From positions 124,001 to 188,000 of IMG/VR virus record IMGVR_UViG_3300034117_001294: DNA of 64,000 nucleotides, one strand, 5' to 3'. Every line of letters begins with the position of its first letter. The first letter of the stretch is position 1. A model generated the notes under the pieces. The model was given only the letters and a program-made list of their open reading frames with translations, made no database searches and was not told the origin of the DNA. The position numbers and the translations under genes are program-made. This document shows, piece by piece, positions 15,514-63,230 of the stretch.

Positions 15514-15528
15514 ACAATCTGCTACAAT
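15500..15528 (+). promoter_or_regulatory. sigma70-type promoter
   Basis: TTGCAA-17 bp-TACAAT. Confidence 0.55.
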
Positions 15529-15544
15529 AAACAAAGGAAAAATT

Positions 15545-27276: not shown

Positions 27277-27800
27277 TGGCATTACAATACATCAACACTG
27301 GAACAAGTGCAAACAAAGGAGACGGTGATAGTCTCCGAGTAGCATTCCACAAAATTAATCAAAACTTTTCACAAGTTCAAAGTTCCAGTACGTCATCTGT
27401 TGTTATCAGCGATAGTGGTGAAGTGCCTGCAATTGAACTACAATCATTTGGTGGCACATTTACCTTACCGGGCGACAACTCTACGGCTGTGCAACTTTTT
27501 GAATTTGATAAAAGAATATATAGAGGTGCTAGCATAGATATTCTAGCAGAGAACCAAACTACTGATACACAGGATTCCGGAAGTAGCTATATGGTAACCT
27601 GGAATAGCACTACCAGTCATGTGTTAGGTACAGGAATTGTGAGCTTATTTGAAAACGGTAGCACCAATAATGCCAACTGGGACATTGTAGATACATCAAT
27701 CTATGACAATCGAGTGAGAGTACAGGCCTATAATGTTTCCGGACTAACTGCTACTAATGTAATTTCTTGGCGTGCTCAAGTAAGTTTGTTTAGGTTATAA
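27276..27800 (+). CDS. baseplate/fibre-connector protein
   Basis: INTGTSANKGDGDSLRVAFHKINQNF (gp9/gp10-like N-terminus). Confidence 0.6.
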   Translation: MALQYINTGTSANKGDGDSLRVAFHKINQNFSQVQSSSTSSVVISDSGEVPAIELQSFGGTFTLPGDNSTAVQLFEFDKRIYRGASIDILAENQTTDTQDSGSSYMVTWNSTTSHVLGTGIVSLFENGSTNNANWDIVDTSIYDNRVRVQAYNVSGLTATNVISWRAQVSLFRL

Positions 27801-27801
27801 T

Positions 27802-30531: not shown

Positions 30532-30534
30532 AAG

Positions 30535-33072: not shown

Positions 33073-36017
33073 GTACCATTAGTAATCTACCCGTTATTGG
33101 TTCAATAACAACGGCAACTAGTATGCCTGTTGCTGACGGCAACCTAACTAAACAGATGACTGTAGGGCAGTTAGGCGAATTCATTAATAATGAATTAGTC
33201 ACATTCAATGTGTCAACGGCAACTACTAGCACTATTGGCGGAATTAAAATTGGCGATGGTTTAAATATTGACCAAGAAGGATTTTTAAATGTAACAACTG
33301 TTGCTACTACTGCAACTACTTCTACTCTAGGAACAATTATAGTAGGCGACGGTTTAGAAATTGTTGAAGGTGTAGTCAATGTAGTTTCAATGGGTGCAAC
33401 TGGTGCTCGGGGTGCAACTGGCACTAGAGGATCGACTGGTGCAACTGGTCCTAGACTGACCGCAGTAATTTCAACTTCAAGACCATCGGTGGCAGCGGCT
33501 GGGGACATGTGGCTTGATACTCAAGAAACAGGACAACTGTTTACTTACAACGGTTCTGTTTGGGTATCAGCAAGTCCTGGTGGTGCTGTTGGAGAAACGG
33601 GAGCAACTGGTTCAGTCGGTGCTACGGGTGCAACTGGGTATCAGGGTGCCACCGGTGCTACCGGATTTACTGGCGGGCCAGGTGCTACAGGCTTAACCGG
33701 TGCAACTGGTGCCCAAGGCATTCCTGGCACATTTGCAGGTCAAGGGTCTACTGGTGCAAGCGGATTGCCGGGCGTAGACGGTGCAACTGGTGCAACTGGT
33801 AGTGGTAGCACAGGTGCAACCGGAGTTGGTTTCATTCCTTTGTATTCTCAAACTACTGCAACTATCAGTTTAAACACTGTAACTTTCGTAACTCATTTAT
33901 CGTCTAGTACTGTAGCGTATACAGTAAGTTCTAGAGTAAGGGCTACTGCGGACGCTGATATTTTATCAAACTTTGACGGCATTGTTGAAAGTTTTATTGG
34001 AGATCAGCTCACTATTAGACCGTTAACTAGCTTTGGTGCAGGAACATTCCAAGCATGGACTATAACATTAGTCGGCGGACAAGGTGCTAGAGGTTCTACA
34101 GGACCGGATGGTGCTACCGGAGCAACGGGTATTGGATCTACTGGTGCTACCGGTGCTACTGGACCTCAAGGTGCTACTGGTGCAGGTGCTACAGGTGCTC
34201 AGGGAGAAATTGGATCTACTGGTGCTACCGGTGCTACTGGACTTCAAGGGGCAACAGGTAGTGGTAGTACAGGTGCTACAGGAAATATTGGATCAACTGG
34301 TGCTACAGGTGCTACAGGTGCAACTGGGCCAGTTGGTTCAACAGGTGCTACAGGTGCTACAGGTGCTACTGGTCCTCAAGGTGCTACTGGGCCCCAAGGC
34401 ATTCCTGGAACGTTTGCAGGTCAAGGAGCAACAGGTGCTCAGGGAGAAATTGGATCTACTGGTGCAACTGGATTGCAAGGCGGCACAGGTTCTACTGGAC
34501 CTCAAGGATCTGAAGGAAATATTGGTGCTACTGGTGCTCAGGGATCAACTGGTGCAACCGGAGCAGGTGCAACTGGAGCGACAGGTGCTATTGGAGCAAC
34601 AGGTGCTACTGGTGCTACTGGTCCAGCAGGTGCTACAGGATCTGGTGCTACAGGTGCAACCGGTGCACAGGGTGCTACAGGCCCACAGGGACAAAACGGT
34701 GCCACCGGTCAAGGTGCTTCAGGTTCAACTGGACCGCAAGGTGATCAAGGATCAACAGGAGCAACCGGATTAACAGGTTCAACTGGTCTGGGTGCCACAG
34801 GTTCAACTGGTGCAACTGGATTCATCGGTGCTACAGGTGCCGTTGGTGAGTTCGGTAGTACAGGTGCTACAGGTATTCAAGGCACTACCGGAGCGTTTGG
34901 AGCAACAGGTGCTACAGGACCGACTGGAACTAGAGGATCAACAGGGGCTACTGGCCCAGCAGGTGCTACTGGTAGTGGTTCTACCGGTGCTACAGGTGCA
35001 GCCGGACAGTTTGGGTCTACTGGGGCTACAGGGCAATGGGGATCTACTGGTGCTACTGGTCTATGGGGATCTACTGGTGCCACTGGTCCAACAGGATCAA
35101 CTGGACCTGGATACCTACAACTAATTTCTACATCAACTACCTTAGTTATAACTACCAGTACTTCGACTTTTGTATTTCAAGTTGATAAAGCATACGGAAC
35201 TAATGCGTATACAACATCAACTCGTGTTCGTGCAGTGGCATTTACCAGTACTGCATTTAGCACAGTTATTGACGGCTACGTTGAATGGTATACTGGCACT
35301 AATATAGGTATTGCTCCATATACCATTAACGGGCCGGGAACATTTAAAGATTGGTCTATTAGTCTTACTGGTGCAAGAGGATTTCAAGGATTTACAGGTG
35401 CCACTGGTCCTGCTGGTGCAACAGGTGCAATTGCAAATCCATTAAGTAGCGTCTTTACAATTACAAATACTACCAGTGCAACTTCAACAAACTCTGGTGC
35501 TCTACAAGTTGTAGGTGGTGCTGGCATTGGCGGAAACTTACATGTTGGCGGAAATATTTCAGTCAATAATAGTCAGGCTGTAAACGGCCCTGCATTCTCA
35601 GTTTATCCAGACTCGGGAGTAACGCAGACAATTACTTCTGGAACACAACAAAAAGTGTTGTTCCAACTTGAAGATTTTGACACTAATGGAAATTTTGCCA
35701 GTTCAAGATTTACGCCCACTGTTGCAGGTTATTATCAACTAAATGCCGCAGTTCGCATAAGCGGTACTATGGGTACTGGTGAAAGCATGTTAGTTATTTG
35801 GAAAAATGGATCAGAGTATAAGCGTGGTTGGAATGCAAGTGGCACAGAAGTAGGTGCTAGTTTCTTTAGCATGGGCGTAAGCACTATAGCTTATGCTAAC
35901 GGAACTGGAGATTATTTTGAAGTCTATATTCAACAGACTAGCGGCAGCAGTAAAGATATTACCGTTGCTGGCGGAAACATTACATGGTTTAACGGCTGCA
36001 TGATGCGTGGTGCGTAA
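33069..36017 (+). CDS. collagen-like fibre with C1q-like head
   Basis: GAT/GST repeats; C-terminal PAFSVY...KVLFQ.EDFDT...[10 protein letters not shown]. Confidence 0.8.
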
Positions 36018-36038
36018 TTAGAAATATAGGAATACACA

Positions 36039-36872
36039 ATGGCAATTCAATTTCCATCAAGCCCGATAGCTGGTCAAGTTTACACTTACAACGGCAGTCT
36101 TTGGGTTTATAACAGCACATCAACAGCATGGGTTGCAGGCCCATTACCTAGAGGTGCCACAGGTGCAACTGGTATGCCGGGTGCCACAGGTCCTAGAGGA
36201 TTAGACGGAACTGTAGCGTTTGCAGGTGCTACTGGTGCAACTGGGCAAAGTGGATCAACAGGACCGGGTGGTGCTACCGGATTGCAAGGAATCCCCGGAA
36301 CTGCGGCAGCACAGGGCAGCACAGGTGCTACTGGCCCTCAAGGGGCAACCGGACCACAAGGAGCTACTGGTCAAGGTGCCACAGGTGCTACGGGTGCAAT
36401 TGGTTCGTCCGGTGCTACTGGTACTGGCAATGACGGTTCTACTGGTGCTACTGGTCTAAGAGGGGCAACAGGTGCTACTGGTATTACTGGTGCAACGGGT
36501 CAAATAGGCCTAACTGGCTCAACTGGACTAACTGGTGCAACAGGTAATCTAGGAGCAACTGGGGCTGTTACAGTAGTGGGCAATACTTACACTGTGCAGA
36601 CTCTTTACATCTCAACGCTAACTGTTACCGGAGTAAGCACTGCTGCAACTATTCAATCAGGCAACGATCTTAATTTACGGGCTGCTGGACAAATTACTGT
36701 TAACAGTCCTTTTGTATTAACTACTGCAACTACTGCACAATTATCTGCGTTAGGTGCAATTACACGACAAGGTGCAATACTTTATGTAGTAGATGCTGCG
36801 GGCGGTGGGCAACCTTGTTTCTATGACGGAGCCAATTGGAGACTATTCACTGATAGAACAGTGATATCGTAA
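36039..36872 (+). CDS. short collagen-like fibre
   Basis: N-terminal [21 protein letters not shown] repeats. Confidence 0.75.
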
Positions 36873-36875
36873 GGA

Positions 36876-38450
36876 ATGTCAATGTTACGAAAATATTATG
36901 TCGTAGTTGAAAATCCAAATGACAAGCCCGGCGTTCATGCAGATTTGACTACGGATTATTCAGACGAAGCCATTCCAGAACGTGCCGTAGAAATCATTAA
37001 CCCAATGCTGCACAGTGAGCACAATTCTACTGTGATGCTAACTGACGAAGAAGCGGCGGCACTGATGTCCGATCTTAGGATCAAAGAAGTTCATAGAGAT
37101 CCTGTTGAAATGGGCGTTAAGAAAAGAACAACAGGTATTAGAACTGGTGTTTTTAACAAATCAGTTGAGCCTTTTCAGACTTCAAAAAATTGGGGTTTGA
37201 TTAGATGCCTAAGCACAGTGACTAATTTTCCAACAGGGTTTGGGTCTAGTACTGGTCCATTTACTTTTAATCTAAATGGTTCAGGAGTTGATATAATTAT
37301 TATCGATACAGGTGTCGAGCCTAACCATCCAGAATTTGCAGTTAATGCAGACGGTACTGGAGGTAGCAGAGTTGTAGATTACGACTGGACACAGCACGGA
37401 ATTATTACATCTGCACCCACAGGCGGGTTCTTAGGGGACTGCGATGGACATGGCAGCAACTGTGCCAGCATTGCGGCAGGCAATACACAGGGTTGGGCAC
37501 CGGGTGCAAATATCTATAGTCTACGTTCAGTTGGTTCAGGTGCGGCAACAGAATACGATATAACAGATGGCAGAGAATTAGGACTGTTAGATGACTTTGA
37601 AGTTTGGCAAACTATCAGAGCATTTCATGTAGCTAAGTCTGTAGATCCCACAACTGGTTACAAGAGACCTACTATTGTTAATTGCAGTTTTGGTTTCTTT
37701 TATAGCTACACAAGAGTAACAGGTATTAGATATCGTAGTACTAACTATGCCGTATCAACTACTACTGCGGCATACGGAACTATCGGAATTCCCGAAGGTG
37801 GCATAGGTGTACACGGATATTTCTATCCTGCATTAAATGCTGAAATAGAAAGTTGTATCAATGCCGGAGTTATTGTAGTAGCTGCTGCCGGTAACGATCG
37901 TCATAAAATTGATGTCAGCGGTGGTCTCGATTATAACAACTATTGGACTGAATATACGGGCTTTACTTATTATTACCATAGAGGATCAACTCCTGCAGGT
38001 ACTAATGGAGTAATCTGTGTCGGTGCAATTGCAGCCTATGCAACTGCTGCGGTTAATCCCGAACATAAACGAGATTTTAGCTGCACAGGACCCGGGGTAG
38101 ATATATGGGCCCCAGGAGATTATATTATGGGTGCATATGCAAATAGTGCATATGCATATCCTGCGGTAGCGGATCCTAGAAATTCTAATTACTATCTAAA
38201 TGCCGTATCCGGAACCAGTCAAGCATGTCCACAGGTAGTGGGTGTATTGGCCAATGTGTTACAGGCAAGACCACAGATGACTCAACAACAGTGTTTAAAT
38301 TGGACAACTTCTACAGGCAGCACATGGAAAGTTAACGAAAGTTATTACGGCGGTTCTGGCTACACTAACTGGGGCAGCTTACAAGGTGGCTCAGCTAAAG
38401 CATTGTATCAGGTTTTTAATTCTGCAACACCCCTCACAATCTTCGGATAA
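36876..38450 (+). CDS. subtilisin-like S8 serine protease
   Basis: IIDTG (Asp), GHGSNCASIAAG (His), AAAGN oxyanion, SGTSQACPQV (Ser). Confidence 0.9.
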   Translation: MSMLRKYYVVVENPNDKPGVHADLTTDYSDEAIPERAVEIINPMLHSEHNSTVMLTDEEAAALMSDLRIKEVHRDPVEMGVKKRTTGIRTGVFNKSVEPFQTSKNWGLIRCLSTVTNFPTGFGSSTGPFTFNLNGSGVDIIIIDTGVEPNHPEFAVNADGTGGSRVVDYDWTQHGIITSAPTGGFLGDCDGHGSNCASIAAGNTQGWAPGANIYSLRSVGSGAATEYDITDGRELGLLDDFEVWQTIRAFHVAKSVDPTTGYKRPTIVNCSFGFFYSYTRVTGIRYRSTNYAVSTTTAAYGTIGIPEGGIGVHGYFYPALNAEIESCINAGVIVVAAAGNDRHKIDVSGGLDYNNYWTEYTGFTYYYHRGSTPAGTNGVICVGAIAAYATAAVNPEHKRDFSCTGPGVDIWAPGDYIMGAYANSAYAYPAVADPRNSNYYLNAVSGTSQACPQVVGVLANVLQARPQMTQQQCLNWTTSTGSTWKVNESYYGGSGYTNWGSLQGGSAKALYQVFNSATPLTIFG

Positions 38451-50361: not shown

Positions 50362-51195
50362 ATGGACCATTACAAAACTTTAGGCATTTCAAAAGAAGCA
50401 ACACAAGACGAAATTAAAAAAGCGTTTCGTAGTCTAGCTTCAAAACATCACCCAGATAAGGGAGGTGATACTGCCTCTTTTCAAAAAATTCAAGAAGCAT
50501 ATGCTACACTGGGAGATCCAGAAAAACGAGCAGCATATGATAATCCCAGTCCGTTTGGACAAGATCCATTTGGAGGATGGCAACAGGCAAATACCGGCGG
50601 AGTTCCGCAAGGATTTGAACAATTCTTTCATCACTTTGGTCCAGACCTGGGTGCAGTGTTTGGCAGAAGGCCTCAGCGTAATAAAAATATAAATCTTGAA
50701 ACAGTTATTAGTCTAGAAGAAGCATTTGCTGGTAAAGAAATTATTGCAAGCTATCGTTTAATAAATCATCAAGAAAGAACGTTTGAAGTTAAAATTCCTG
50801 CTGGTATTAATGATGGAATAGTACTAAGGATTGCAGGTGCAGGAGATAATTCATTTGCAGGTATGCCTCCCGGTGATGCTATGCTGTCAGTAAGAATTCG
50901 CCCTCACTCAAGATTTCAGAGAAATGGAAATGATCTTGTTGAACAGATTAATATCACTGCCTGGGATGCAATGTTAGGCAAAGACCTTGAAGTAATTACA
51001 GTTGGAGGAGATAAACTAACTGTTCAAATAAAAGAAGGCACTCAACCAGATTCGTTCCTACGAATACAAGGCTACGGAATGCCAGTAATGAATAATCCCG
51101 GTATTAAAGGCAATCATATGATACTGATTAAAGTATCAATTCCTAATAACCTTACAGAGTATCAAAAGAATACACTGAGATCAATTGCATCTTAA
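50362..51195 (+). CDS. dnaJ: DnaJ class II (CbpA-like) co-chaperone
   Basis: J-domain with HPD, G/F-rich linker, C-terminal domain; no Cys zinc finger. Confidence 0.85.
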   Translation: MDHYKTLGISKEATQDEIKKAFRSLASKHHPDKGGDTASFQKIQEAYATLGDPEKRAAYDNPSPFGQDPFGGWQQANTGGVPQGFEQFFHHFGPDLGAVFGRRPQRNKNINLETVISLEEAFAGKEIIASYRLINHQERTFEVKIPAGINDGIVLRIAGAGDNSFAGMPPGDAMLSVRIRPHSRFQRNGNDLVEQINITAWDAMLGKDLEVITVGGDKLTVQIKEGTQPDSFLRIQGYGMPVMNNPGIKGNHMILIKVSIPNNLTEYQKNTLRSIAS

Positions 51196-51203
51196 ATATT
51201 ACT

Positions 51204-51704
51204 ATGTTGACAATTATAAAAAATCCAGACCCAATATTGGCTGAAAGAATGCCAGAATTTGATTTTGAAAATCCACTAACCGATCCTGTTCAACTTGAAA
51301 AAGACATGATTGAAGCTATGCTTGCCAATGGCGGCATTGGATTATCTGCTAATCAAATAGGTGTTAGAACTCGTATGTTTGTTATGGGACATCAGAAATA
51401 TCGAGATCATGCACAGGCATTTTTCAATCCAATCATTGCGAGAGTAACAGACGACTTGCTCGAAGAAGAGGAAGGATGCTTGAGTTTTCCCAACATTTAT
51501 GCTAAAATAAAAAGACCAAGAGGAATTCTTGTTAGGTTTCAAAACTCAAAAGGTGAGACCCAAGAAGCTGAATTTTTTGGTTACGAGTGTCGATGCTTTT
51601 TACATGAATTTGATCATCTAGAAGGAATCACATTTCAAAATAGAACAAGTGCTCTCAAGTGGGCGTTGGCAGTAAAGAAATCAATCAAAAGGAAATACAA
51701 ATAA
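51204..51704 (+). CDS. def: peptide deformylase
   Basis: GIGLSANQIG, EEGCLS, HEFDHLEGI. Confidence 0.95.
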   Translation: MLTIIKNPDPILAERMPEFDFENPLTDPVQLEKDMIEAMLANGGIGLSANQIGVRTRMFVMGHQKYRDHAQAFFNPIIARVTDDLLEEEEGCLSFPNIYAKIKRPRGILVRFQNSKGETQEAEFFGYECRCFLHEFDHLEGITFQNRTSALKWALAVKKSIKRKYK

Positions 51705-53974
51705 TGCTGGAACCAAATAACGATCTCGAAGGAATGTTTGAACGTGCGATCGAAGTTGCCGCTAAACATAAACATGAGTATATCACGCTGGAACATTTTT
51801 TGTACAGTATGATAACTGATGAAAACTTCAAAGGGATGCTAAAAGATTTTGGTGCCGAAGTTGAGTTGTTAAAGAAGAGTCTCGAAAAGTTTATTCGAGA
51901 TGATCTTAACGATATTAAAACTGACAAAGAAAATTATCGTCCAAAGAAAACAAACACTGTAGAGCGTATGTTGAATCGTGCTTTTACACAAGTGTTGTTT
52001 AGCGGCCGTACAGTAATTGAACCAATTGACTGCTTTATTAGTATTTTTAGTGAAAAGAAGAGCTTTGCTAACTTCTTTCTACGCAAGGCTAAAATTGATA
52101 AAGACAAGTTTATTGAATTTCTACATAACAGTGCGTTAAACGAAGACGGTGAGGCTAGCGAAGTAGGTAGCAATCAACTAGAAAAAATGATTGTTCAATA
52201 CTGTGCAAACTTAACTAATAGGGTCAAGCAGAAAAAGATTGATCCTGTTATCGGTCGTGAGAAAGAAATTGAAGAAATTCAACTTGCACTAGCACGCCGT
52301 CAAAAATCAAATGTTATGTTGATCGGCGACCCAGGTGTAGGTAAAACTGCTATTGCAGAGGGCCTTGCTCGCAAGATTGAAGAAGGCAAGGTTCCTAAGT
52401 TTATTCAAGGTCATACTGTTTACAGTCTAGATATCAGTGCATTACTAGCAGGCAGTAAGTATCGTGGCGACTTTGAAGAACGCTTAAAGATGGTTATTAC
52501 TGCACTTGAAAAGAAAAAGAACTGTATCTTGTTCATCGACGAAGCACATATGATGAACGGTGCTGGATCAGCAAGTGGCGGATCTAATGACATGGCAAAT
52601 ATGTTGAAACCAGCATTAGGTAAAGGTACTATCAAAGTTGTGGCATCGACTACATGGGAAGAATTCCGTAAGCACTTTGAAAAGGATCGTGCCCTGATGC
52701 GTCGATTCCAACGTGTTGTAGTTAACGAGCCAGATGAAGCTACTGCTATTAAAATCCTTAAAGGTCTTAAGAAGTACTATGAACAGCATCACGGTGTTAA
52801 GATCACTAATCAGGCAGTTATTGACAGCGTAAAATATTCTATCAAGTATATGACTGATAAGAAGCTGCCAGATAAAGCAATTGACCTAATTGACTGTGCA
52901 TGTGCTAGATTCAAAGTCAGAGACGAAGAAGCAGGCATTGTTGATCACGATGAAATTTTATTTGAAGTGTCAAAGTTAACTGGCTTACCTTTAGATCAAA
53001 TTGCACAAAAAGAAAACAAGAATCTTAAAGACCTTGACAAGAACATGCGTAACAAAGTGTTTGGTCAGGAAACTGCAATTGAAATATTGTTAGATAAAAT
53101 CTTTATTGCACAAGCAGGTTTAAAGAGCTTAAACAAACCAGTAGGTAGTTTCCTATTTACAGGACCAACCGGTGTAGGTAAGACTGAAACTGCAAAAGTA
53201 TTGGCTGCAAGTATGGGAGTAGAACTAGTTCGCTTTGATATGAGTGAATTCCAAGAGAAACACTCAATTGCTAAGTTTATTGGTGCTCCCCCCGGCTATA
53301 TTGGATTTGAAGACAATGCAGGTATGTTGATTACCAAACTGCAAGAGCATCCAACTGCTATTTTACTGTTTGATGAAATTGAGAAAGCTCATCCTGATGT
53401 TGCTAACTTACTACTACAAATGATGGACAATGGTTATGTTACTGGATCTAATGGTAAGAAGGCTGATGGTCGAAATGCCATTCTTATCCTTACTAGTAAT
53501 TTAGGTGCTGCCGATAACGATCGTAATGCAGTTGGATTTAGTAGTTTAGAAAGAGGTGACGAAACTGATGGTGCAATTAACAGTTTCTTTAAACCAGAAT
53601 TCCGCAATCGATTAGACGGTATTATCAAGTTTGGTAAACTAGATCACAATACCATGGCTAAGATTGTCAAGAAGTTTATTGACGAACTAAACAGTTTGTT
53701 GAAAGATAAGAATGTTGCTGTTAAGTTAACTGCTGACGCTGCCGAATTGTTAATCAAGAAAGGATTTAATCGTAAGATGGGTGCTCGTCCACTACAACGT
53801 ACAATTGATGATATGATTAAGAAGCCGCTGAGTAAGGAAATTTTATTTGGTCGGTTAGTAAACGGTGGAGTTGTTGAAGTAGGTGCTAACAGTAATGATC
53901 TTACCTTAACTTATCCTGAAATTTTACCCGTAGTAGAAAATGTTGAAATTGATAAAGCGACAGAAAGTCGATAA
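51704..53974 (+). CDS. clpA: ClpA-type AAA+ unfoldase
   Basis: N-domain HEYITLEH, two Walker A motifs (GDPGVGKT, GPTGVGKT), FIDEAH, RFDMSE, VGF ClpP-docking loop, GARPL; ATG at 51704. Confidence 0.9.
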   Translation: MLEPNNDLEGMFERAIEVAAKHKHEYITLEHFLYSMITDENFKGMLKDFGAEVELLKKSLEKFIRDDLNDIKTDKENYRPKKTNTVERMLNRAFTQVLFSGRTVIEPIDCFISIFSEKKSFANFFLRKAKIDKDKFIEFLHNSALNEDGEASEVGSNQLEKMIVQYCANLTNRVKQKKIDPVIGREKEIEEIQLALARRQKSNVMLIGDPGVGKTAIAEGLARKIEEGKVPKFIQGHTVYSLDISALLAGSKYRGDFEERLKMVITALEKKKNCILFIDEAHMMNGAGSASGGSNDMANMLKPALGKGTIKVVASTTWEEFRKHFEKDRALMRRFQRVVVNEPDEATAIKILKGLKKYYEQHHGVKITNQAVIDSVKYSIKYMTDKKLPDKAIDLIDCACARFKVRDEEAGIVDHDEILFEVSKLTGLPLDQIAQKENKNLKDLDKNMRNKVFGQETAIEILLDKIFIAQAGLKSLNKPVGSFLFTGPTGVGKTETAKVLAASMGVELVRFDMSEFQEKHSIAKFIGAPPGYIGFEDNAGMLITKLQEHPTAILLFDEIEKAHPDVANLLLQMMDNGYVTGSNGKKADGRNAILILTSNLGAADNDRNAVGFSSLERGDETDGAINSFFKPEFRNRLDGIIKFGKLDHNTMAKIVKKFIDELNSLLKDKNVAVKLTADAAELLIKKGFNRKMGARPLQRTIDDMIKKPLSKEILFGRLVNGGVVEVGANSNDLTLTYPEILPVVENVEIDKATESR

Positions 53975-55541: not shown

Positions 55542-58500
55542 ATGAATTTAAATGAGCTGTTTAGTAACAAAAAGAAAGTTGTGTCAGAAGGTGGAAATTT
55601 ATCGCTACCTGGCGGGCACGATGCACAGCAAATCGATCTTAAAGTGCATAATCGTTCCTACATTGTACCAATTTTAGATACACTGTTGATTAATATCAAC
55701 AGTTCTTTTGCAAAAAAATACAAAAAACCTTTGTGGAATCCGCAACTACTACAGAGTAAACAATTTCTAAGTGGAAGTAGTCTACACTTCTTTAATACCA
55801 AAGGTATTACTGACCAACAATTTGTAGAAAAGAAACCAAAAGTAGGCGACATTGACACACAGGTCAACAAAGAAAACGAACAAGAATTAGAACAATGGTT
55901 ATCTGCTAGTCAAGGTAAGATGGTAGGCAATGCCAAGTTCTTAGGTTTCCAAAGAGGCAACGAACAATTCTCCAGTTTATGGGAGCTACAAGACCCACCT
56001 ATTAAAGTGCAAATTGACTTAGAATTTGTAGAGTTTGACAAAGACGAACCCACTCCATGGAGCAAATTTAGTCATAGCAGCAGCTGGGATGATCTAAACG
56101 CAGGAGTTAAGGGTGTATTCCACAAGTTTTTAATTCAAAGTCTAGCATCATTAAGTAGAAAAGATTTCTTACTACGCAAAGCTGTAGGACGAGGCAAGGC
56201 CAAAGAAATACAAGATGTTCCTACAACTGATAACATGGTCAGCTTTGCAGTATCCAGTAAAGAAGGCGGCGGCCTACGTGCCAAATACGAACCAGTATTA
56301 GATGCAAACGGACAGCCTTTAATTAGTAACGGTATGCCAGTTATGCAGGCATTACCAGCAACTGGTTACGAACAAGACATTGGAAAGATTTTTGGATCTA
56401 TCTTTGGTTCGAGATTAAATCCTAAACAAGCTGCACAATTAGAAAGCAAGTACTGGAGCTTTACTGGTTTAGTTGATGCAATGAATACGCTAGTAACTCC
56501 AGAAGAAAAGCAGTCAGTGTTGTCTGCATTTATTGACAAAATATTTGGCAAGGGTGCCCAAGGTCTTTACAAAGGCGATCCAGAGCGTGATAGTGCAGAA
56601 AAATCTGCTGCATTGGATTTAATGATCAATAAATTAGGAGTTCAGACACCTAGTGATCTTGAACAGATGAAGCAGCAATACAAGGCATCGTACAGAGTTA
56701 CTGCTGAAAGTTTGCAAGAAGCAGAAGTTAAAGCACAGTTCCGTAAGAACATGCCACACCTACGTGATCTAAAGCCTATTGACTTTTTAGATCTATTGGA
56801 CGAGATTCACGATGGTAATGGTAATTTTAAATTACAAAACATTCCGTTAAATGTTAAGATTGACGGATTTGGCGGACGTTTTGGTAAGGATGCAGAAGGC
56901 AAGCCTTTTATGGCTACCAGCAATACTCCTCCAAGATATAAAGCAGGATTTGTACAATATCATCAAGACAAGGGCACAACTGATCCTGAAATTTTAGGTC
57001 GTGCAGAAAAGTTTGATGAACTGTTTAATGAAATGATGAACGCTATCAAATTGGTTGATAGCAAGCTAGGTGCAGACTTTCTTGTTAATAAACAGGTCAC
57101 CTGTGAAGTATTGTTCTTGCCGTTTGCAGCCGAAACGTCAGAGGGCAAATTAAAATTTGTAGGAATTCAATACGATAAGTTTCCTCCAGGTGTAGAATTA
57201 GTTCTTGTGCCGTTCCGTGTAGTAGATGCTAGTTCCGGAGAAGATGTACCTGATGCTAACGATGTTGTTACAAGTCTAAGCAAATTAGGCGGACAAGGAA
57301 GTGTTAGATTCCTTAGTAATAGTCTAGTACAAAAAGACGGACTTGATGTTACTGAGATTATTAATCCTTTAGATAATATCGAAGAACTAAAACAAATTGT
57401 ATCTGACACAGCAGGCAAAAGAGATCGTGCCAGTTTGCAACTAAGACGCGAAGTAGAAGAAAAATTAATGCCTGTTAAGATTGCACTGGAAAAGGCAATT
57501 GATGCAGATCCTAACATTATTGGCAAAGATATATTAGGTCAAGACTACGAAGGTATTGTTATCAACAGTCGTCTTGGCCCTATCAAAGTTACTAGCCAAC
57601 AACAAAAAGATATTATTACCCAAAAGAACGCTGCCAAAGCTGCCGCTCGTGCAGAACAGCCGCGTGGTGAAAACAAAACTGCGGTAGTTGCTATCGGTAG
57701 CTTTGTGGGACACAAAGGTCATCAACAGCTATTTGGTCTTACAATTAATAAGGCAAAAGAAGTCAGCGGCGATCCTTATCTGTTTATGGGCAGTGCAGTA
57801 GGTGCAGACGATCCTATTCCAGTTGCTGACAAAATTAAAACTTGGAAACAATTGTATCCCGAGTATGCAGGCAATATCAGTGCTGTAACACAAGAGGGCG
57901 GATCTTTGATGCAAAAGATCAAGCACGAGTTAATCAACCCGTTGCCAGGCAAGCCACCACGCTACGATAATGTTATTATTATGGTAGGTGAAGATCAGGC
58001 CAAGATGCCTATCGCACAGGCCCTAATGAAGGCAGTTAATAAGTTTCCTGGATACGAGCATGTTAAGGTACAATTAGAAGTTACTCCTAGAGGAACTGGC
58101 ATGAGCTTTACTAAGCTACGTAACGTGTTAAAAACTGGAGATGAGCAACAAGCATTCCAAATGTGGAATGATGCATTCAATGGCGGCCAGGATGGAGCAA
58201 AACCATTACCGTCACAATGGATTAAACATTTAATGGATGTGTCAAAGACCGGAATGAGCACACCTCAACCAAAGCCAGCAGTTAAGAAGCCTGCTGTACT
58301 ACCTACTCCGCAGACTGTTCAACAACCTGCACTAGGTGAAATGAGATTGTTTAATGCACTAATGAGTCCTAAAAAAATTGTAAATGAAAAGACTATTGAA
58401 GAACGTAAACGTAAAAAAAGTAAAGGTGCAGCATGGGGTCCAGGGCCATATGGTTGGTACGGATTTGATGCAGGTTATAGTGGTAACGGTGGAGATGGTG

Positions 58501-60350
58501 GTAGTGATGGTGGTGAGAGCATGAATCAAGAAAACTTTGCTGATAGTCGTAATCCACAAGACAACAGCAACAGTAAACGGCAAATGTTAAAAATTGCATC
58601 ATTAAACAATATTAAAGATGTGAACAAAATTAATGCAGGGCAGATGTTAAAATTGCCTAACGGCACAACTTATAAAGTAATGCCTGGAGATACCCTGTCT
58701 ACAATTGCGGCAAGACAAGTGAAAGATCAATCTTCTCCAATGCCCCAACCCTCAGTTAAACAAGGTCCAAACTCTAACATAGATCAAACGACAAGAGATA
58801 AAGCACAGGCATTTGTTGGTCAACAAAAACCAGAAATGGGTGGTGGCAGGGGGGTCGTTAATCCAGCAACCGTCCGGCCCGACGAACCAACCCAAACCGG
58901 AGTTCGAAGTGGTCCTAACACAAACATAGATCAACCAGCAAGAGATAGGGCCAAAGCGGCTGTTACTAAAATTTCTAGTGAAGACGATATCATGAATATG
59001 GTTAAAGATCATGAAGGTGTAAAAAATAAACCATACCAAGATACAAAAGGATTATGGACTGTAGGAGTAGGTCACTTAATTGGTGATGGCAAGACTCTCC
59101 CTTCAGAGTGGAAAAGAACATTTTCAGACGCAGAAATAATGAATCTGTTTAAAAAGGATTATCAGCATCATAAACAGGCAGCAGAAAAAATTCCTGGATT
59201 TAGTAATTTAAACATGAACGGACAGGCTGCTCTAATTGATCTAACATTTAACATGGGTCCAAGATGGTGGAAGGCTTGGCCTAATTTTACAAAAGCCATG
59301 CAAGCAGGAAACATAGATCAAGCAGCAAATGCATTAAAAAATAGTGCATGGTATTCACAAGTTGGTAGAAGAGCACCTAAAATTGTATCTCTTTTACAGA
59401 GCGGAGATCGATCTGTAGCAGAAAACTTTGCGGATGGACGTAATCCACAAGACAAGGGCGACAGTAAACGTCACGGCGTTCCTACAAAATCGTCAGTGAG
59501 CAATCTACGTAAAGTAGCTAAACAAGGCGGCCGTAAAGGACAATTAGCACATTGGATGGCAAATATGAAAGCAGGTAAAGCAAAAGCTAAGAATGAAGAC
59601 TTCAACGGCGAATACGACGACGAAGCAGGAATGGCACAGAGTAATCTACGCACAATGGCTCGTGCAGTTGATGGTTTATTAAAAACTATTAAGAGCAACG
59701 ATAACTTGCCAGAATGGGGACAAGAAAAGATTGCCAAAGCAGAAATGATGTTGGTCAGTGTCTGGGATTATTTGTTAAGCCAAAAAGAAATGGGCATGGA
59801 TCCTAAGATCAACGAAAGCAAGGCTGTAGAAAGTTTAAGACAGATTGTCGCAGAGTTGTCCAATGAAAAATTAGGACAATATAAAAAGGCCGCCGGTGAT
59901 CAAGCAACTGCCGCAGACAAAGCGGGCGACTATGCTAAGGGTCATAAACGTTTCAAAGGAATTGTTAAAGCAACTAACAAGCAGTTTGATAATGATGCTA
60001 AAAAGCATAGAGAGCAAGGTATGGCGGAGGCTGGCAGCAATGCTATAGATACTGTATCTAAACGCTTAACTGATCCTAAAGATGGAATGACAGCCAAACT
60101 TAGAGCAGCTGGTGATAAGAAACGCGATAGTCAGTACATGGGCACACAGATTGCTAAGAATGATCGAACCAGTAAAGACGAATGGGGCAACTTAAAAGAA
60201 AAGATTAAAGGTGCAGACGGCAAAGCCTGTTGGAAAGGTTATAAGTACGCAGGTACTAAGAACGGTAAAGACAAGTGTGTGCCAATTGGCGAAGCCTACG
60301 AACTTGAAATGACCCTGGCTATTCTAAAGCTGTTTGAAAGTAATAAATGA
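55542..60350 (+). CDS. 1602-aa multidomain polyprotein: pol-beta-like NTase, ligase-like adenylation domain, HxGH nucleotidyltransferase, LysM, GH24 lysozyme, short head-protein modules
   Basis: GSS..VGDID; KIDG/CEVLF/EGIVI/IKV; GHKGH...VGEDQ...MSFTKLR; LysM YKVMPGDTLSTIA; HEGVKNKPYQDTKGLWT (E-x8-D-x5-T). Confidence 0.7.
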   Translation: MNLNELFSNKKKVVSEGGNLSLPGGHDAQQIDLKVHNRSYIVPILDTLLININSSFAKKYKKPLWNPQLLQSKQFLSGSSLHFFNTKGITDQQFVEKKPKVGDIDTQVNKENEQELEQWLSASQGKMVGNAKFLGFQRGNEQFSSLWELQDPPIKVQIDLEFVEFDKDEPTPWSKFSHSSSWDDLNAGVKGVFHKFLIQSLASLSRKDFLLRKAVGRGKAKEIQDVPTTDNMVSFAVSSKEGGGLRAKYEPVLDANGQPLISNGMPVMQALPATGYEQDIGKIFGSIFGSRLNPKQAAQLESKYWSFTGLVDAMNTLVTPEEKQSVLSAFIDKIFGKGAQGLYKGDPERDSAEKSAALDLMINKLGVQTPSDLEQMKQQYKASYRVTAESLQEAEVKAQFRKNMPHLRDLKPIDFLDLLDEIHDGNGNFKLQNIPLNVKIDGFGGRFGKDAEGKPFMATSNTPPRYKAGFVQYHQDKGTTDPEILGRAEKFDELFNEMMNAIKLVDSKLGADFLVNKQVTCEVLFLPFAAETSEGKLKFVGIQYDKFPPGVELVLVPFRVVDASSGEDVPDANDVVTSLSKLGGQGSVRFLSNSLVQKDGLDVTEIINPLDNIEELKQIVSDTAGKRDRASLQLRREVEEKLMPVKIALEKAIDADPNIIGKDILGQDYEGIVINSRLGPIKVTSQQQKDIITQKNAAKAAARAEQPRGENKTAVVAIGSFVGHKGHQQLFGLTINKAKEVSGDPYLFMGSAVGADDPIPVADKIKTWKQLYPEYAGNISAVTQEGGSLMQKIKHELINPLPGKPPRYDNVIIMVGEDQAKMPIAQALMKAVNKFPGYEHVKVQLEVTPRGTGMSFTKLRNVLKTGDEQQAFQMWNDAFNGGQDGAKPLPSQWIKHLMDVSKTGMSTPQPKPAVKKPAVLPTPQTVQQPALGEMRLFNALMSPKKIVNEKTIEERKRKKSKGAAWGPGPYGWYGFDAGYSGNGGDGGSDGGESMNQENFADSRNPQDNSNSKRQMLKIASLNNIKDVNKINAGQMLKLPNGTTYKVMPGDTLSTIAARQVKDQSSPMPQPSVKQGPNSNIDQTTRDKAQAFVGQQKPEMGGGRGVVNPATVRPDEPTQTGVRSGPNTNIDQPARDRAKAAVTKISSEDDIMNMVKDHEGVKNKPYQDTKGLWTVGVGHLIGDGKTLPSEWKRTFSDAEIMNLFKKDYQHHKQAAEKIPGFSNLNMNGQAALIDLTFNMGPRWWKAWPNFTKAMQAGNIDQAANALKNSAWYSQVGRRAPKIVSLLQSGDRSVAENFADGRNPQDKGDSKRHGVPTKSSVSNLRKVAKQGGRKGQLAHWMANMKAGKAKAKNEDFNGEYDDEAGMAQSNLRTMARAVDGLLKTIKSNDNLPEWGQEKIAKAEMMLVSVWDYLLSQKEMGMDPKINESKAVESLRQIVAELSNEKLGQYKKAAGDQATAADKAGDYAKGHKRFKGIVKATNKQFDNDAKKHREQGMAEAGSNAIDTVSKRLTDPKDGMTAKLRAAGDKKRDSQYMGTQIAKNDRTSKDEWGNLKEKIKGADGKACWKGYKYAGTKNGKDKCVPIGEAYELEMTLAILKLFESNK
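58530..59473 (+). repeat. 53-bp direct repeat pair (58530-58582 and 59421-59473)
   Basis: 46/53 identical by hand alignment; both encode ENFAD(S/G)RNPQD..(N/D)SKR. Confidence 0.85.
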
Positions 60351-60613
60351 AGCAATATCGAATAGCAGGATTTCCTGTAGATACTTCAACTGATCCAGAC
60401 TGTGCTCTAAGCCCAGATGATCCTATACATGCACTACAATCTAGTAACTGGTTAGGAGAGTTAGGTGCAGAACAGCGTATGCGTGAATACTTAAAAAAGA
60501 GAGACACACCTTTGCATAGTCAGCACGGTAATGAAAATGCTCGCATAATGCGTGAACAAGGAATTAAACCGGGTACACCGGCTTGGTTCGAACTTTGGTT
60601 TGGTAAAAAATAA
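60347..60613 (+). CDS. hypothetical protein
   Basis: Ends EQGIKPGTPAWFELWF. Confidence 0.6.
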   Translation: MKQYRIAGFPVDTSTDPDCALSPDDPIHALQSSNWLGELGAEQRMREYLKKRDTPLHSQHGNENARIMREQGIKPGTPAWFELWFGKK

Positions 60614-60621
60614 ATAACATT

Positions 60622-60993
60622 ATGAGAGCAAAAGAATTCATCGCTGAAAGAAAAGAAGGTAAGATAACAAAACGTCAGCAACAATCTACTAGGGGTCTGC
60701 ATCGTTATTCAGACGCCGAAAAAGCAGATAGCGGTTATGTTAGCTTTAGAGTAGGCATGGCCGCAGCTATGAGCGATGGAAAAAATAAATTAGACATCGA
60801 TTCAAAGAGTTGGGCAGGAAAGAAAAAGACTGCACATCCTTACACTCAAGTGGAAGCAGACATGCTCAAAGCAGCATACAAAGCTGCCGGTGCCAGTTAT
60901 GAAGATATGAATCACGGCGATATGGATAGTTGCGAGTTAGACTCGACTAATATATACGGGCCTGTACCAGATAGAAAGAAACTAACAAAATGA
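60622..60993 (+). CDS. putative internal head protein with T4 CTS-like N-terminus
   Basis: MRAKEFIAE versus T4 capsid-targeting sequence MKTYQEFIAE; TAAATA upstream. Confidence 0.6.
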   Translation: MRAKEFIAERKEGKITKRQQQSTRGLHRYSDAEKADSGYVSFRVGMAAAMSDGKNKLDIDSKSWAGKKKTAHPYTQVEADMLKAAYKAAGASYEDMNHGDMDSCELDSTNIYGPVPDRKKLTK

Positions 60994-62177
60994 GAATTAA
61001 ACAACTTTTAGAATCAGCAACTACTGGAGGCACAAGCTCAGCATCAGTAGCAACAGTTGCAAAAGGCAGTAAGGGAATGATTAAACGTCAGAAACCTACT
61101 GACAATGCATTGGATAGTGGAAAGTTGTTTCAAGAAACTAACGCTGCGGAAGGCAAGGAAGATAAGATTGCTCAACTAAAGAAAGACCATGACACCGCAG
61201 TGCATTGGAGCAAGAATGAAACAAGCCCACAAAAGCGTGAGGCTGCTCGTCAAAAGGCTGAAAAGATCAAGCGTCACTTAGATACACAATACAAGCAAGG
61301 TGTGGCGGAGGTTAGTGATGCTACGCTAACCAGTTATCTAACAAAATTAGATAAAGATAATCTTAAACACAGAATGGATCCCACAAAACGCAGTGACACA
61401 AAACGCATGAAAAGTGGTCCTAATTTTGTTAAAGCGTTTACCAAATTGGATAATAAAAAGCAAGGTGTGGCGGAGGCCACAGGTGACGAAAAATTTGATA
61501 AATCAATGAGAAAAATGACTGGAAAAATTACTCCAGGCGATGCTGACGAGATGTGGCCGACACAAGAATTTGAACCAGTTGATCTTGATCCATCATACTT
61601 GCCAAGTATGGAAAAATACAAGGCAAAATTATTTCCATTGGCTTACCAATACTGGACTGACGGCGACAATGCAGATGAATTAAGAGCATTAGGATGGGAA
61701 CCCGATTATGGCGACGACTATGTTATGGTGGTGCTGTCTGGCATCGGACACGACGGTCACATTCAATACGACAAATATGATTTTGATGCTGAAGATGAAA
61801 ACAATGAAGGTGTGGCGGAGGTAGCACCGCCGGGAGCCAAAGCCGAACGCATGGTCAAGCATATTAAAAAGGGATATGCTAAAGATGGTAAGTTAACTAA
61901 AACTGAAAAAAGCAAGGCATACGGTGCTGCATGGAAAGCACACAATGCCGGCAAAGTAGAAGAACAAAGTGTAGAAGAAAACAAGAAAGGTGTACGTGCT
62001 GTGAAACATGCAGTTAAGCCTAGAAACTTTGTTGCCAAGAACGCAGTACAAAGTGGTGCAGGTGCTCACAAAGATAAAAAGAAAGCACAAAAGCAAGGTG
62101 ATGTAAAACACAAGGCTAAAGAGCCAGCTTACGAATCTAAGCTATGGGCAGCATTAGATCGAAGAATTATCAAGTAA
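60990..62177 (+). CDS. modular putative internal head polyprotein
   Basis: MRIKQLLES start; modules separated by (Q/E)GVAE. Confidence 0.6.
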   Translation: MRIKQLLESATTGGTSSASVATVAKGSKGMIKRQKPTDNALDSGKLFQETNAAEGKEDKIAQLKKDHDTAVHWSKNETSPQKREAARQKAEKIKRHLDTQYKQGVAEVSDATLTSYLTKLDKDNLKHRMDPTKRSDTKRMKSGPNFVKAFTKLDNKKQGVAEATGDEKFDKSMRKMTGKITPGDADEMWPTQEFEPVDLDPSYLPSMEKYKAKLFPLAYQYWTDGDNADELRALGWEPDYGDDYVMVVLSGIGHDGHIQYDKYDFDAEDENNEGVAEVAPPGAKAERMVKHIKKGYAKDGKLTKTEKSKAYGAAWKAHNAGKVEEQSVEENKKGVRAVKHAVKPRNFVAKNAVQSGAGAHKDKKKAQKQGDVKHKAKEPAYESKLWAALDRRIIK

Positions 62178-62593
62178 TGAAAATCATAGACCTATTAGAG
62201 GATGTAAATTCAAAACCTGATTTTATGAAAATACTTCAGGAGTTTCTTCCCTTTGCAGTCAATGAACTTAAATTAAAATCTGTTCCAAAAATTAAAATGC
62301 ATTTACGTATTGGCAGCGTAGATGATCAACCTAGTTTTGGTAGTTTTAACAGTGAAACTAAAATAATCAATATTGCAATTGAAGATAGACATCCTTTAGA
62401 TATTTTAAGAACTCTTGCACACGAGATGGTACATTACAAACAAAACGAAGAAACTGGACTGAAGCCAGGTGCGGGTGCTACCGGTAGCCCTGAAGAAAAT
62501 CAAGCACACGAACTAGCTGGTATTGTGATGCGTAAATTTAATAAAGCGAACCCTGAATTTTTTAATACCGACGCTGTTAATCTAGAAGAATAA
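62177..62593 (+). CDS. HExxH zincin-like protein with CTS-like N-terminus
   Basis: MKIIDLLED; LAHEMVHYKQ...EENQA; ATG at 62177. Confidence 0.55.
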   Translation: MKIIDLLEDVNSKPDFMKILQEFLPFAVNELKLKSVPKIKMHLRIGSVDDQPSFGSFNSETKIINIAIEDRHPLDILRTLAHEMVHYKQNEETGLKPGAGATGSPEENQAHELAGIVMRKFNKANPEFFNTDAVNLEE

Positions 62594-62594
62594 A

Positions 62595-63230
62595 ATGAGT
62601 TTCTTAGTTGCAAACTTACCTCCGGTGCATTGTTTTGTACGCAAAGAATTTTTGTATGATTTTAAGTCAGGACAGGGCGAATACGAACCGTGCATATGGG
62701 TGTCAATCAAAAGCCTGCGTAGTCAAGCATTCCGTATAGAAAGCTATTTGCCCAGATACGGAGCACTGTACGACAAACTACCTTTACATGCCTATGTAAG
62801 CAGAAACACCGATTTAGAGCCAGACAAGTTTGTACCACTCGATACACTGCAAATATGGGACTGCTTCAGCTATGATATTGCTGTAATACAAAAGGCGTTC
62901 TTACGTAATCTTTCCTGCGAGTTCTATGCCAAGGATCGTCAGCTACACAAAGGCGACTATATGTTTACCGTAGACAATGCTAGTCCAGATCTCAATGTTA
63001 TAGACACTAGCTACTCAGAGTGGCCCGAAGATCACAAAAGTTTTAACTTTATACAACTAGATAATGGACAATATGCCGCACAGCCCAATAATCGTTGCAG
63101 ATTCTTTGATGCAGCCAGTAACCCTAAAGAAATGTTATTTCCAGATTTTAAAGTTGCTACAAAAAAATGGGTTGTAGAAACAAACCCCAAATGGCGATTG
63201 GGCGACTCCGATACAGTAACTTACGAATAA
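62595..63230 (+). CDS. conserved phage hypothetical protein
   Basis: VANLPPVHCFVRKEFLYD...NGQYAAQPNNR. Confidence 0.6.
   Translation: MSFLVANLPPVHCFVRKEFLYDFKSGQGEYEPCIWVSIKSLRSQAFRIESYLPRYGALYDKLPLHAYVSRNTDLEPDKFVPLDTLQIWDCFSYDIAVIQKAFLRNLSCEFYAKDRQLHKGDYMFTVDNASPDLNVIDTSYSEWPEDHKSFNFIQLDNGQYAAQPNNRCRFFDAASNPKEMLFPDFKVATKKWVVETNPKWRLGDSDTVTYE

Follow-up and report, generated by a model that had tools for sequence, protein, structure and literature searches.

Host defences encounter the internal proteins ejected from the phage head before any other phage product and yet, to our knowledge, these are almost uncharted outside of T4 and a few giant phages. Here, two genes are described in which a short coding motif, translated as (Q/E)G(V/M)AE and referred to below as the joint, recurs between unrelated protein modules, or cassettes. 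Both genes lie within a stretch of 64,000 nucleotides (nt), positions 124,001 to 188,000 of the IMG/VR virus record IMGVR_UViG_3300034117_001294, and the whole of this stretch is termed the window. The internal proteins of T4 are abundant, of small size and basic, and differ greatly from phage to phage (PMC9026906; PMC3012670), and in T-even phages the targeting sequence is their sole conserved part (PMC3012670; PMC9026906). This capsid-targeting propeptide comprises 10-19 amino acids (aa), with processing determinants at residues 8 and 10 (PMC9026906). The protease gp21 and its giant-phage homologues cut after Glu, with cleavage at I-T-E and L-T-E in T4 Alt and at A-x-E in SPN3US (PMC5694885).

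Several other described systems combine modular architecture with exchange at short sequences. For polyvalent proteins, Iyer et al. (2017) proposed peptidase release of domains and cassette-like recombinational variability; no conserved inter-domain joint was described, the term 'linker' being absent from the text, and embedded zincin-like or assemblin-like peptidases were favoured (PMC5512222). The PeSL elements of T4-type phages are short conserved cassette flanks that serve as homologous exchange sites, for which excision mini-circles were shown and which the authors compared to integrons (Arbiol et al. 2010; PMC2839356). Small patches of homology suffice for recombination by the T4 machinery (PMC2839356). 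In the gp38 adhesins and gp37 tail fibres of T-even phages, exchanges occur within or near conserved in-frame motifs, which are glycine-rich in gp38 (PMC3157838). In integron arrays and R64 shufflons, too, a short sequence recurs at the borders of units that can be exchanged. In bacteria, the VENN motif of CdiA and the DPxGL motif of Rhs are conserved peptides that mark a swappable C-terminal module, in Rhs also forming a proteolytic site, and the DNA of such pre-toxin motifs is thought to guide recombination with orphan modules.

Based on the comparisons presented below, the two genes of the window are probably polyprotein versions of T4-type internal head proteins, with the joint serving both as a protease site and as a point of short-homology recombination. 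The 15-mer AAGGTRTGGCGGAGG matches the window at 60016-60030, 61297-61311, 61462-61476 and 61807-61821, all on the + strand and in one common codon register. No further match was present in the window with up to two mismatches allowed, and none of 100 shuffles reached four matches (mean 0.12). Copy 1 encodes QGMAE (aa 1492-1496) in the open reading frame (ORF) at 55542-60350, a polyprotein of 1602 aa, while copies 2 to 4 encode QGVAE (aa 103-107), QGVAE (aa 158-162) and EGVAE (aa 273-277) in the 395-aa ORF at 60990-62177. An original prediction, made from the letters of the window alone, had listed the same sites with a few additional bases on the 5' side as four copies in two genes and one frame, and had given spacings of 165 and 345 bp; both descriptions were accurate. 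The partial copy it placed at 61146 is GCT-GCG-GAA-GGC (A-A-E-G, 61143-61154), a degenerate joint that coincides with a module boundary in five other loci. The enclosed modules, described there as basic and acidic, have isoelectric points of 9.9 (aa 108-162) and 4.1 (aa 163-277), respectively.

With the 395-aa protein as query, 2068 metagenomic proteins of 220-690 aa were matched, many with 80-98% identity over just 15-30% of the query. The best 120 of these 2068 proteins contain 278 QGVAE-type joints, including 188 QGVAE, 43 EGVAE, 14 KGVAE and 11 QGMAE. Segments cut after the motif have discrete lengths and cluster into families that occur in many orders and combinations. The cassette termed F2 (window aa 108-162) is always 55 aa long and was found in 25 proteins, the F3 cassette (window aa 55-107) is 53 aa long and was found in 19, and in one relative (L019) a single ORF carries eleven cassettes with ten joints. 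Internal ends of BLASTP high-scoring segment pairs (HSPs) fall at the joint Glu in 336 cases and one residue later in 210, and 25% of HSP ends lie within 3 aa of a joint compared to 4% at random positions. A domain census showed that the motif proteins of relatives also carry GNAT, deaminase, ParB_N, GH19 and NTP_transf_2. The exact 16-mer was present on at least 120 viral contigs among the matches listed, in frame inside long ORFs in 111 of 115 occurrences. One resemblance proposed originally, between the module after copy 2 (F2) and the polyprotein module after I-V-A-E, did not find support with BLASTP, which returned a sole match of 10 aa in a different register (E = 0.07). The phage collection yielded no close cultured relatives of the window phage, just module-sized matches to cyanomyoviruses, and the searchable literature yielded no description of this feature, QGVAE surfacing only in an unrelated human protein with the same five letters.

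At the DNA level, blocks of identity between loci begin and end at the joint. One locus (L007) matches the window from joint 3 to joint 4 (61461-61819) at 98.9% and is unalignable outside, five loci match 61146-61309/61311 at ~90%, and the identity block of L019 begins at 61807. Blocks of 93% identity or more gave 281 distinct internal endpoints across all loci, and 35% of these endpoints fall inside the 21-nt joint versus 0.9% of random positions in the same loci. A further relative (L014) is ~87% identical to the window over 10 kb and differs from it, according to blastn, by three in-frame differences, all bounded by Glu joints. The first is a LysM-lysozyme block of 1056 nt (58365-59420) that the window has and L014 lacks; beyond the window, the lysozyme segment occurs only in identical loci. 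The second is a diverged allele of the module after the polyprotein Q-G-M-A-E, where the joint of L014 reads K-K-V-G-E. In the third, window positions 61155-61952, comprising three cassettes and a DUF6321 module, correspond to 513 nt of different cassettes. The order of modules also changes, as a module ending in W-G-N-L-K-E precedes the 'LSNE' module in two loci (L021 and L028) and follows it in the window. Since the joint lies inside ORFs, exchanges must be in frame, and they are. The expectation that cassettes would be added, lost, swapped and reordered in frame at the motif is thus borne out by comparison between phages.

In order to describe the joint as a peptide, the contexts upstream of nine window modules were examined. 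Glu occupied position P1 in 82 of 94 distinct contexts (87%) and a hydrophobic residue (L/I/V/M/F) occupied P3 in 68 of 94 (72%), compared to a per-residue background of 7.4% for Glu and 2.1% for hydrophobic-x-Glu. The same was true of individual modules: the 'NFADG' module was preceded by Glu in all 26 of its other contexts, with a hydrophobic P3 in 21, and the 'LSNE' module by Glu in 10 of 10. The canonical G-[VMLI]-A-E accounted for just 28% of module-start contexts. QGVAE is no unique signal: among the forms that the generic hydrophobic-x-Glu joint takes, it is the one found most often and the one conserved in its DNA. Modules that come first in an ORF follow leaders of 8-9 residues (e.g. 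M-R-A-S-E-F-I-I-E and M-K-P-S-D-F-L-T-E), and three consecutive window genes start with M-R-A-K-E-F-I-A-E, M-R-I-K-Q-L-L-E and M-K-I-I-D-L-L-E. This is the pattern of internal proteins, a short leader with a hydrophobic P3 and Glu at P1, with leaders of 8-9 aa here versus 10-19 in T4. Taken together, the module-start grammar, the presence of Peptidase_S77 in T4-type genomes and a virion-associated cyanophage family make the proposed protease site more plausible. Furthermore, the N-terminal ~40 aa of the cassette protein (window 60990-61160; L105 6534-6860) align with the T4-type major capsid protein at its maturation site and N-arm, with a pairwise E of 3e-5 and an hhalign probability of 87% (E = 4e-6, 40 columns). 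This moderately supported likeness hints at a targeting segment that imitates the N-terminal region of the capsid protein or originated from it.

The joint could instead be an uncleaved linker, hinge or helix cap within intact multidomain polyvalent proteins, with the breakpoints resulting from selection for whole domains. In the AlphaFold model of the 395-aa protein (pLDDT 55, pTM 0.29), the confidently modelled regions form helical units, and each of the three joints lies in the coil between these, copy 2 following helix 80-102. Motif proteins also carry domains typical of polyvalent proteins (GNAT, ParB_N, deaminase, lysozyme), which are often thought to act or travel whole (PMC5512222). 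Even so, this alternative is unlikely, as it leaves unexplained why an invariant Glu preceded by a hydrophobic P3 is retained when the upstream sequence is otherwise unrelated, why standalone modules have leaders ending in hydrophobic-x-Glu, and why the codons of the joint are fixed (see below).

Cleavage by an enzyme unrelated to capsid assembly, acting in the cytoplasm either ahead of delivery or following it, was also considered and is judged quite improbable. One candidate is the 138-aa HExxH protein encoded directly after the cassette gene, to which it is translationally coupled, and homologues of which recur in 26 loci; among the domains of polyvalent proteins, zincin-like metallopeptidases occur most often, and a role in processing these proteins has been proposed for them (PMC5512222). 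The other candidate is phage ClpP, which is encoded in the window together with a ClpA/B-like ATPase. However, the pairing of a strict P1 Glu with a hydrophobic P3 is documented as the signature of gp21 and S77-S80 proteases, not of zincins or ClpP, and most motif loci have no HExxH gene within reach. The best family match of the HExxH protein is weak and below the cut-off (DUF6782, E = 0.015), and because the protein itself carries a leader resembling a capsid-targeting sequence, it looks like cargo. It could be either co-packaged cargo or a processing metallopeptidase.

The codons of the joint are conserved beyond the needs of the peptide, consistent with the DNA-level constraint that had been predicted. 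In the window, GCG, GAG and GTG represent 6.8%, 19.3% and 13.4% of the codons for Ala, Glu and Val, respectively; the G-ending codons of the motif are atypical, as originally noted. Given that GCG and GAG are rare in the window genes, the use of GCG-GAG at all four A-E pairs, if independent, would be a ~3e-8 event, and the GCG/GAG/GTG form is absent from every other G-[VMIL]-A-E in the window. A sample of 63 distinct joints was assembled from loci found by protein similarity, not by DNA word. GGT was used in 60 of 63 joints (background 41%), GTG in 41 of 55 (16%) and GCG in 49 of 63 (6%), and the choice of Glu codon equalled the background. For pairs with 80-95% protein identity, a small sample, codon identity at conserved Gly, Val and Ala was 95% at the joint versus 69% in cassette bodies. 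Free synonymous variation with a fixed module order, which the original prediction had named as grounds for its own rejection, was therefore not observed: codons are conserved and order varies.

The Glu codon tracks the next residue, with GAA before Gly (GGC) in a ratio of 32:3 and GAG before Ala, Val or Asp in a ratio of 15:6, and P1' is encoded by GNN in 93% of 243 contexts versus 38% overall. The DNA consensus is therefore an 18-mer, CAA GGT GTG GCG GAA GGC, of which the window carries the ...GAG GYN variant. In terms of codons, the third base of Glu covaries with the next codon, GAA standing before GGC and GAG before GCN, GTN or GAY. The G that follows the Glu codon may represent either a peptide preference at P1' or a constraint on DNA. 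GTG and GCG were used in 74% and 83% of cases at G-VAE, in 39% and 31% at other x-VAE of the same proteins, and in 14% and 3% at V-A without a following Glu; this gradation is the pattern that decay from a common canonical joint would give. The 18-mer was found at approximately chance level in 596 Gb of bacterial genomes, with the exception of one probably mis-binned phage contig, and these matches gave no hint of a host.

Translational selection, in which rare GTG-GCG or Shine-Dalgarno-like words (GGTG/GGAGG) pause ribosomes at domain boundaries and so promote co-translational folding, is a very unlikely cause of the fixed codons. Although GCG and GTG are rare in the window, the window joint contains GGAGG, and Shine-Dalgarno-like words are modestly enriched upstream of starts (37% vs 20%), the commonest form of the joint in relatives, GCG-GAA-GGC, is without GGAGG and the Gly codon of the joint is the commonest one (GGT, 95%). 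Generic hydrophobic-x-Glu joints at equivalent boundaries use ordinary codons, the third base of Glu tracks the downstream module, and the endpoints of recent exchange concentrate in the joint word. Internal starts of translation at the joint were rejected, since an in-frame ATG, GTG or TTG after its GGAGG was not found at any of the four copies. Finally, the suggestion that the repeats are a functionless residue of recent tandem duplication in one gene, where three copies do lie within 525 bp, is refuted by flanking modules that are mutually unrelated and by the occurrence of the joint beside upwards of 100 unrelated module families, spread across more than 2000 proteins and at least 120 viral contigs among the matches listed.

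The genomic setting of the joint is that of T4-type phages. The window sits on a contig of 350,846 bp and contains a T4-type clamp loader, baseplate and fibre matches, and a family-B polymerase. Using the head genes of P-HM2 as probes, motif-bearing loci were found to contain gp17 (8 loci), gp18 (8 loci), gp20, gp21 and gp23. Three of these loci (L105, L080 and L138) have their genes arranged as portal, gp21, gp22, gp23, a GIY-YIG-like insert and the cassette gene, and giant relatives, on contigs of up to 364 kb, contain Portal_T4, Peptidase_S77, a scaffold gene and Gp23 according to Pfam. A census of the neighbours of motif genes revealed cytidylyltransferases, endolysins and T4 replication genes; the capsid module was not among the top families of neighbour ORFs in this census. 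Cultured T4-like cyanomyoviruses encode the same kind of protein with generic joints. The family T4-GC119, located between gp16 and gp17 in P-HM2 and S-SM1, is listed with 13 peptide counts among the proteins detected in purified virions of S-SM1 (PMC3037559 Table S8). At least four modules are common to the S-SM1 protein and QGVAE proteins, one match reaching 79% over 47 aa (E = 3e-18), and in one locus (L062) the module common with the S-SM1 protein, which is C-terminal, starts right after a canonical Q-G-V-A-E.

The GIY-YIG-like ORF between gp23 and the cassette gene encodes 240-248 aa (L105 7870-8592, L080 3241-3987, L138 1956-2678), and some neighbours of motif genes match homing endonucleases. 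Co-conversion driven by endonucleases could play a part in the turnover of cassettes.

Several observations weigh against the interpretation of the two genes as cleaved internal head proteins that recombine at the joint. Breakpoints at the joint could equally come from random recombination combined with selection for intact modules, and because instances of the motif are related by descent, the codon statistics overstate the number of independent events. Gln at P5 and Gly at P4 are conserved beyond the known needs of gp21. Genes for gp21 and gp23 of the window phage itself were not found in the window or within 10 kb on either side, a look-up with two exact giant-phage capsid proteins and the viral-collection matches listed also did not locate its head genes, and the protease matches in the window are just a canonical ClpP and a subtilase. 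A motif gene beside gp23 was rejected as a general rule, occurring in 2 of 45 capsid-selected loci. The protein detected in S-SM1 virions is a module-sharing homologue with generic joints, and its detection speaks to presence, not to processing. The low confidence of the AlphaFold model also counts against this interpretation, although a beads-on-a-string architecture would be expected to give it. Cleavage at the joint, packaging of the QGVAE proteins and their ejection are steps that we infer from sequence.

Each of the systems described above resembles the two genes in some respects and differs from them in others. Like IPI, IPII, IPIII and Alt of T4, the modules form a small, mostly basic and diverse putative cargo, with a short leader ending in hydrophobic-x-Glu in T4-type genomes that encode Peptidase_S77. 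Unlike the T4 internal proteins, to which the modules have no sequence homology, one frame contains many modules (as many as 11 in an ORF; 1602 aa in the window) with internal sites, and the six-residue internal joint, most often K/E-Q-G-V-A-E with Gly, Ala or Val next, is conserved at the DNA level. Polyvalent proteins similarly contain many unrelated enzymatic or binding domains (GNAT, ParB_N, deaminase, lysozyme, nucleotidyltransferase) and are predicted to be delivered with DNA. The window polyprotein contains LysM, lysozyme, a nucleotidyltransferase-like segment and at least five small modules, in agreement with the 2-15 disparate domains of that class; the position of a processing peptidase would be taken by the adjacent HExxH protein, with the sub-threshold DUF6782 match given above. 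In contrast to polyvalent proteins, the modules here are mostly ~50 aa and a defined cleavage-type joint recurs between them.

In PeSL, as here, conserved short sequences flank variable cassettes in T4-type genomes. However, PeSL are intergenic, with an early promoter and stem-loop terminator of ~100 bp flanking whole ORFs, whereas the joint is a coding word of 15-18 nt. No stem-loop was found at the joint, which resembles PeSL in its working only. The motifs of gp38 form one structural core in a fixed order, while the modules described here are autonomous, free in order and number, and separated by a joint resembling a protease site. The description of the locus as an integron-like array holds as a functional analogy; in its mechanistic sense it does not, given the lack of an integrase, of an attC-like hairpin and of inverted copies. 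No recombinase, whether IntI, Rci or another, was found among the ~50 window ORFs scanned with Pfam or PHROGs, some small ORFs being outside the scan, in keeping with the original remark that no recombinase is visible in the window. No attC-like fold was common to the joints (z-scores of -0.8 to -2.5, each with a different structure). Integrons carry promoterless whole-gene cassettes, while the joints lie within ORFs, and the four copies, unlike the repeats of shufflons, all run in the same direction on one strand, none being inverted. Pre-toxin motifs belong to bacterial, secreted proteins, with one boundary per protein and another protease chemistry; here there are many boundaries in phage proteins that are putatively head-associated. 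PeSL cassettes, gp38 motifs and internal proteins with capsid-targeting sequences are closer precedents, within T4 biology, than integrons.

If the two genes do encode polyprotein versions of internal head proteins, the leader resembling a capsid-targeting sequence would bring the polyprotein into the prohead, where Peptidase_S77 (gp21 family) would cut it at hydrophobic-x-Glu into modules during head maturation. These modules would be mostly Lys-rich basic cargo, with some enzymes such as lysozyme, and may act as injected micro-effectors with anti-defence roles. The T4-type recombination machinery would exchange, insert and delete modules in frame at the 18-nt joint, within and between co-infecting phages, with recombination driven by homology as opposed to selection on random recombinants. 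Since the recombination point would also be the cleavage site, every recombinant would keep a correct site. A more far-reaching proposal can be offered only tentatively, namely that the 18-nt joint is an actively maintained coding recombination signal, an in-frame counterpart of PeSL or attC, which links a pan-phage pool of hundreds of capsid-delivered micro-protein families, each released by the head protease and with a leader borrowed from the maturation-site segment of the capsid protein for entry into the prohead. Under this proposal the DNA of the joint would be kept uniform because uniformity makes cassettes exchangeable, possibly with the aid of phage nuclease or recombination machinery.

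The features of the two genes and of their immediate neighbours are listed in Table 1. Module boundaries in the polyprotein were set by HSP endpoints, and Pfam places LysM at aa 1017-1039 and Phage_lysozyme at aa 1155-1279. The 395-aa protein comprises, in order, the leader M-R-I-K-Q-L-L-E, the segment resembling the capsid N-arm, F3 (aa 55-107), F2 (aa 108-162), the acidic F5 (aa 163-277), a DUF6321-type module (aa 278-~327) and a DUF7230-type module (aa ~328-395). Its K:R ratio is 60:15, and the window modules are mostly Lys-rich and basic, two being acidic. The 123-aa gene upstream (60622-60993) has homologues in 44 loci. No sequence relatives of the cassette protein or the HExxH protein were found among solved structures.

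Table 1. Coordinates of joints, genes and blocks in the window; the slash follows the Glu of each joint.
Feature	Coordinates	Strand	Basis or remark
1602-aa polyprotein: N-terminal region, cytidylyltransferase-like segment (~aa 700-880), LysM and phage lysozyme (~aa 1017-1279), then five small shared modules	55542..60350	+	ORF, Pfam, PHROG, HSP endpoints
In-frame LysM-lysozyme block, 352 aa; right edge is the S-V-A-E/N joint	58365..59420	+	blastn versus L014
Decayed joint S-V-A-E/N (GTA GCA GAA), upstream of the 'NFADG' basic module	59415..59426	+	HSP ends, contexts elsewhere
Decayed joint I-V-A-E/L (GTC GCA GAG), upstream of the 'LSNE' basic module	59847..59858	+	HSP ends, contexts elsewhere
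Canonical joint copy 1, Q-G-M-A-E/A (CAA GGT ATG GCG GAG GCT)	60015..60032	+	Sequence scan
Generic joint N-L-K-E/K, upstream of the C-terminal Cys 'CWKGY' knuckle module	60189..60200	+	HSP endpoints
123-aa gene, leader M-R-A-K-E-F-I-A-E resembling a capsid-targeting sequence	60622..60993	+	Part of conserved neighbourhood
395-aa cassette protein	60990..62177	+	ORF, family comparison and AlphaFold model
Degenerate joint A-A-E/G (GCT GCG GAA GGC)	61143..61154	+	Left edge shared by the F3 cassette and the L014 replacement segment
Canonical joint copy 2, Q-G-V-A-E/V	61296..61313	+	Five loci end identity blocks at 61309-61311
Canonical joint copy 3, Q-G-V-A-E/A	61461..61478	+	98.9% block of L007 starts at 61461
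Canonical joint copy 4, E-G-V-A-E/V	61806..61823	+	Block of L007 ends at 61819; block of L019 starts at 61807
138-aa HExxH protein, leader M-K-I-I-D-L-L-E	62177..62593	+	Start overlaps the cassette-gene stop (TAATG); independent gene call also 138 aa

Other genes of the window and its flank provide additional context. The cytidylyltransferase/NadR-like unit that is fused into the polyprotein (window 57600-58200) is a separate gene adjoining module proteins in S-RSM4, Sf-CH11 and S-CREM1 (L181, L183 and L319), and its linkage with module proteins is kept across distant T4-like phages. Downstream of the HExxH gene, a 211-aa ORF (62595-63230) matches PHROG 3704 ('ferredoxin', E = 2e-86), has no Pfam domain and is 86-97% conserved in relatives. 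A proteostasis set consists of ClpP (15500-16165; PF00574, 211 bits), DnaJ, peptide deformylase and a 771-aa ClpA/B-like double-AAA+ protein (50362-51195, 51204-51704 and 51659-53974), the last of these encoded just upstream of the conserved block of putative cargo genes. The PHROG match of 15500-16165 to a 'head maturation protease' was rejected, as this is the canonical ClpP among metabolic genes and not a T4-type prohead protease. Positions 20791-38450 encode a fibre protein of 2161 aa and three consecutive collagen-like tail-fibre genes (845, 982 and 277 aa), followed by the subtilase (Peptidase_S8, 524 aa). In the 10 kb left of the window (L321 1-9900), genes on the opposite strand encode fatty-acid desaturases, a hydroxylase, two radical-SAM/B12-binding proteins, an ATP-grasp protein and a PP-binding carrier protein, a lipid- or peptide-modification cluster that is unusual for a phage.

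What is new at this locus is a coding joint that appears to combine a cleavage site of the internal-protein type, polyvalent architecture and motif-mediated shuffling, and it offers a rare example of synonymous sites apparently constrained by exchangeability. If this is correct, a very large set of T4-type phages from freshwater, all uncultured and some with genomes of 350 kb and more, would encode cargo as cleavable polyproteins drawn from a shared and rapidly reshuffled pool, and a single joint would secure both the reading frame and the processing of any recombinant. This would provide a concrete mechanism for the diversification of phage cargo repertoires and a rule by which cargo proteins may be recognized in metagenomes, i.e. 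leader, module, hydrophobic-x-Glu. Furthermore, hundreds of small module families (DUF6321, DUF7230 and others) would become candidates for roles in DNA condensation, host takeover and counter-defence.

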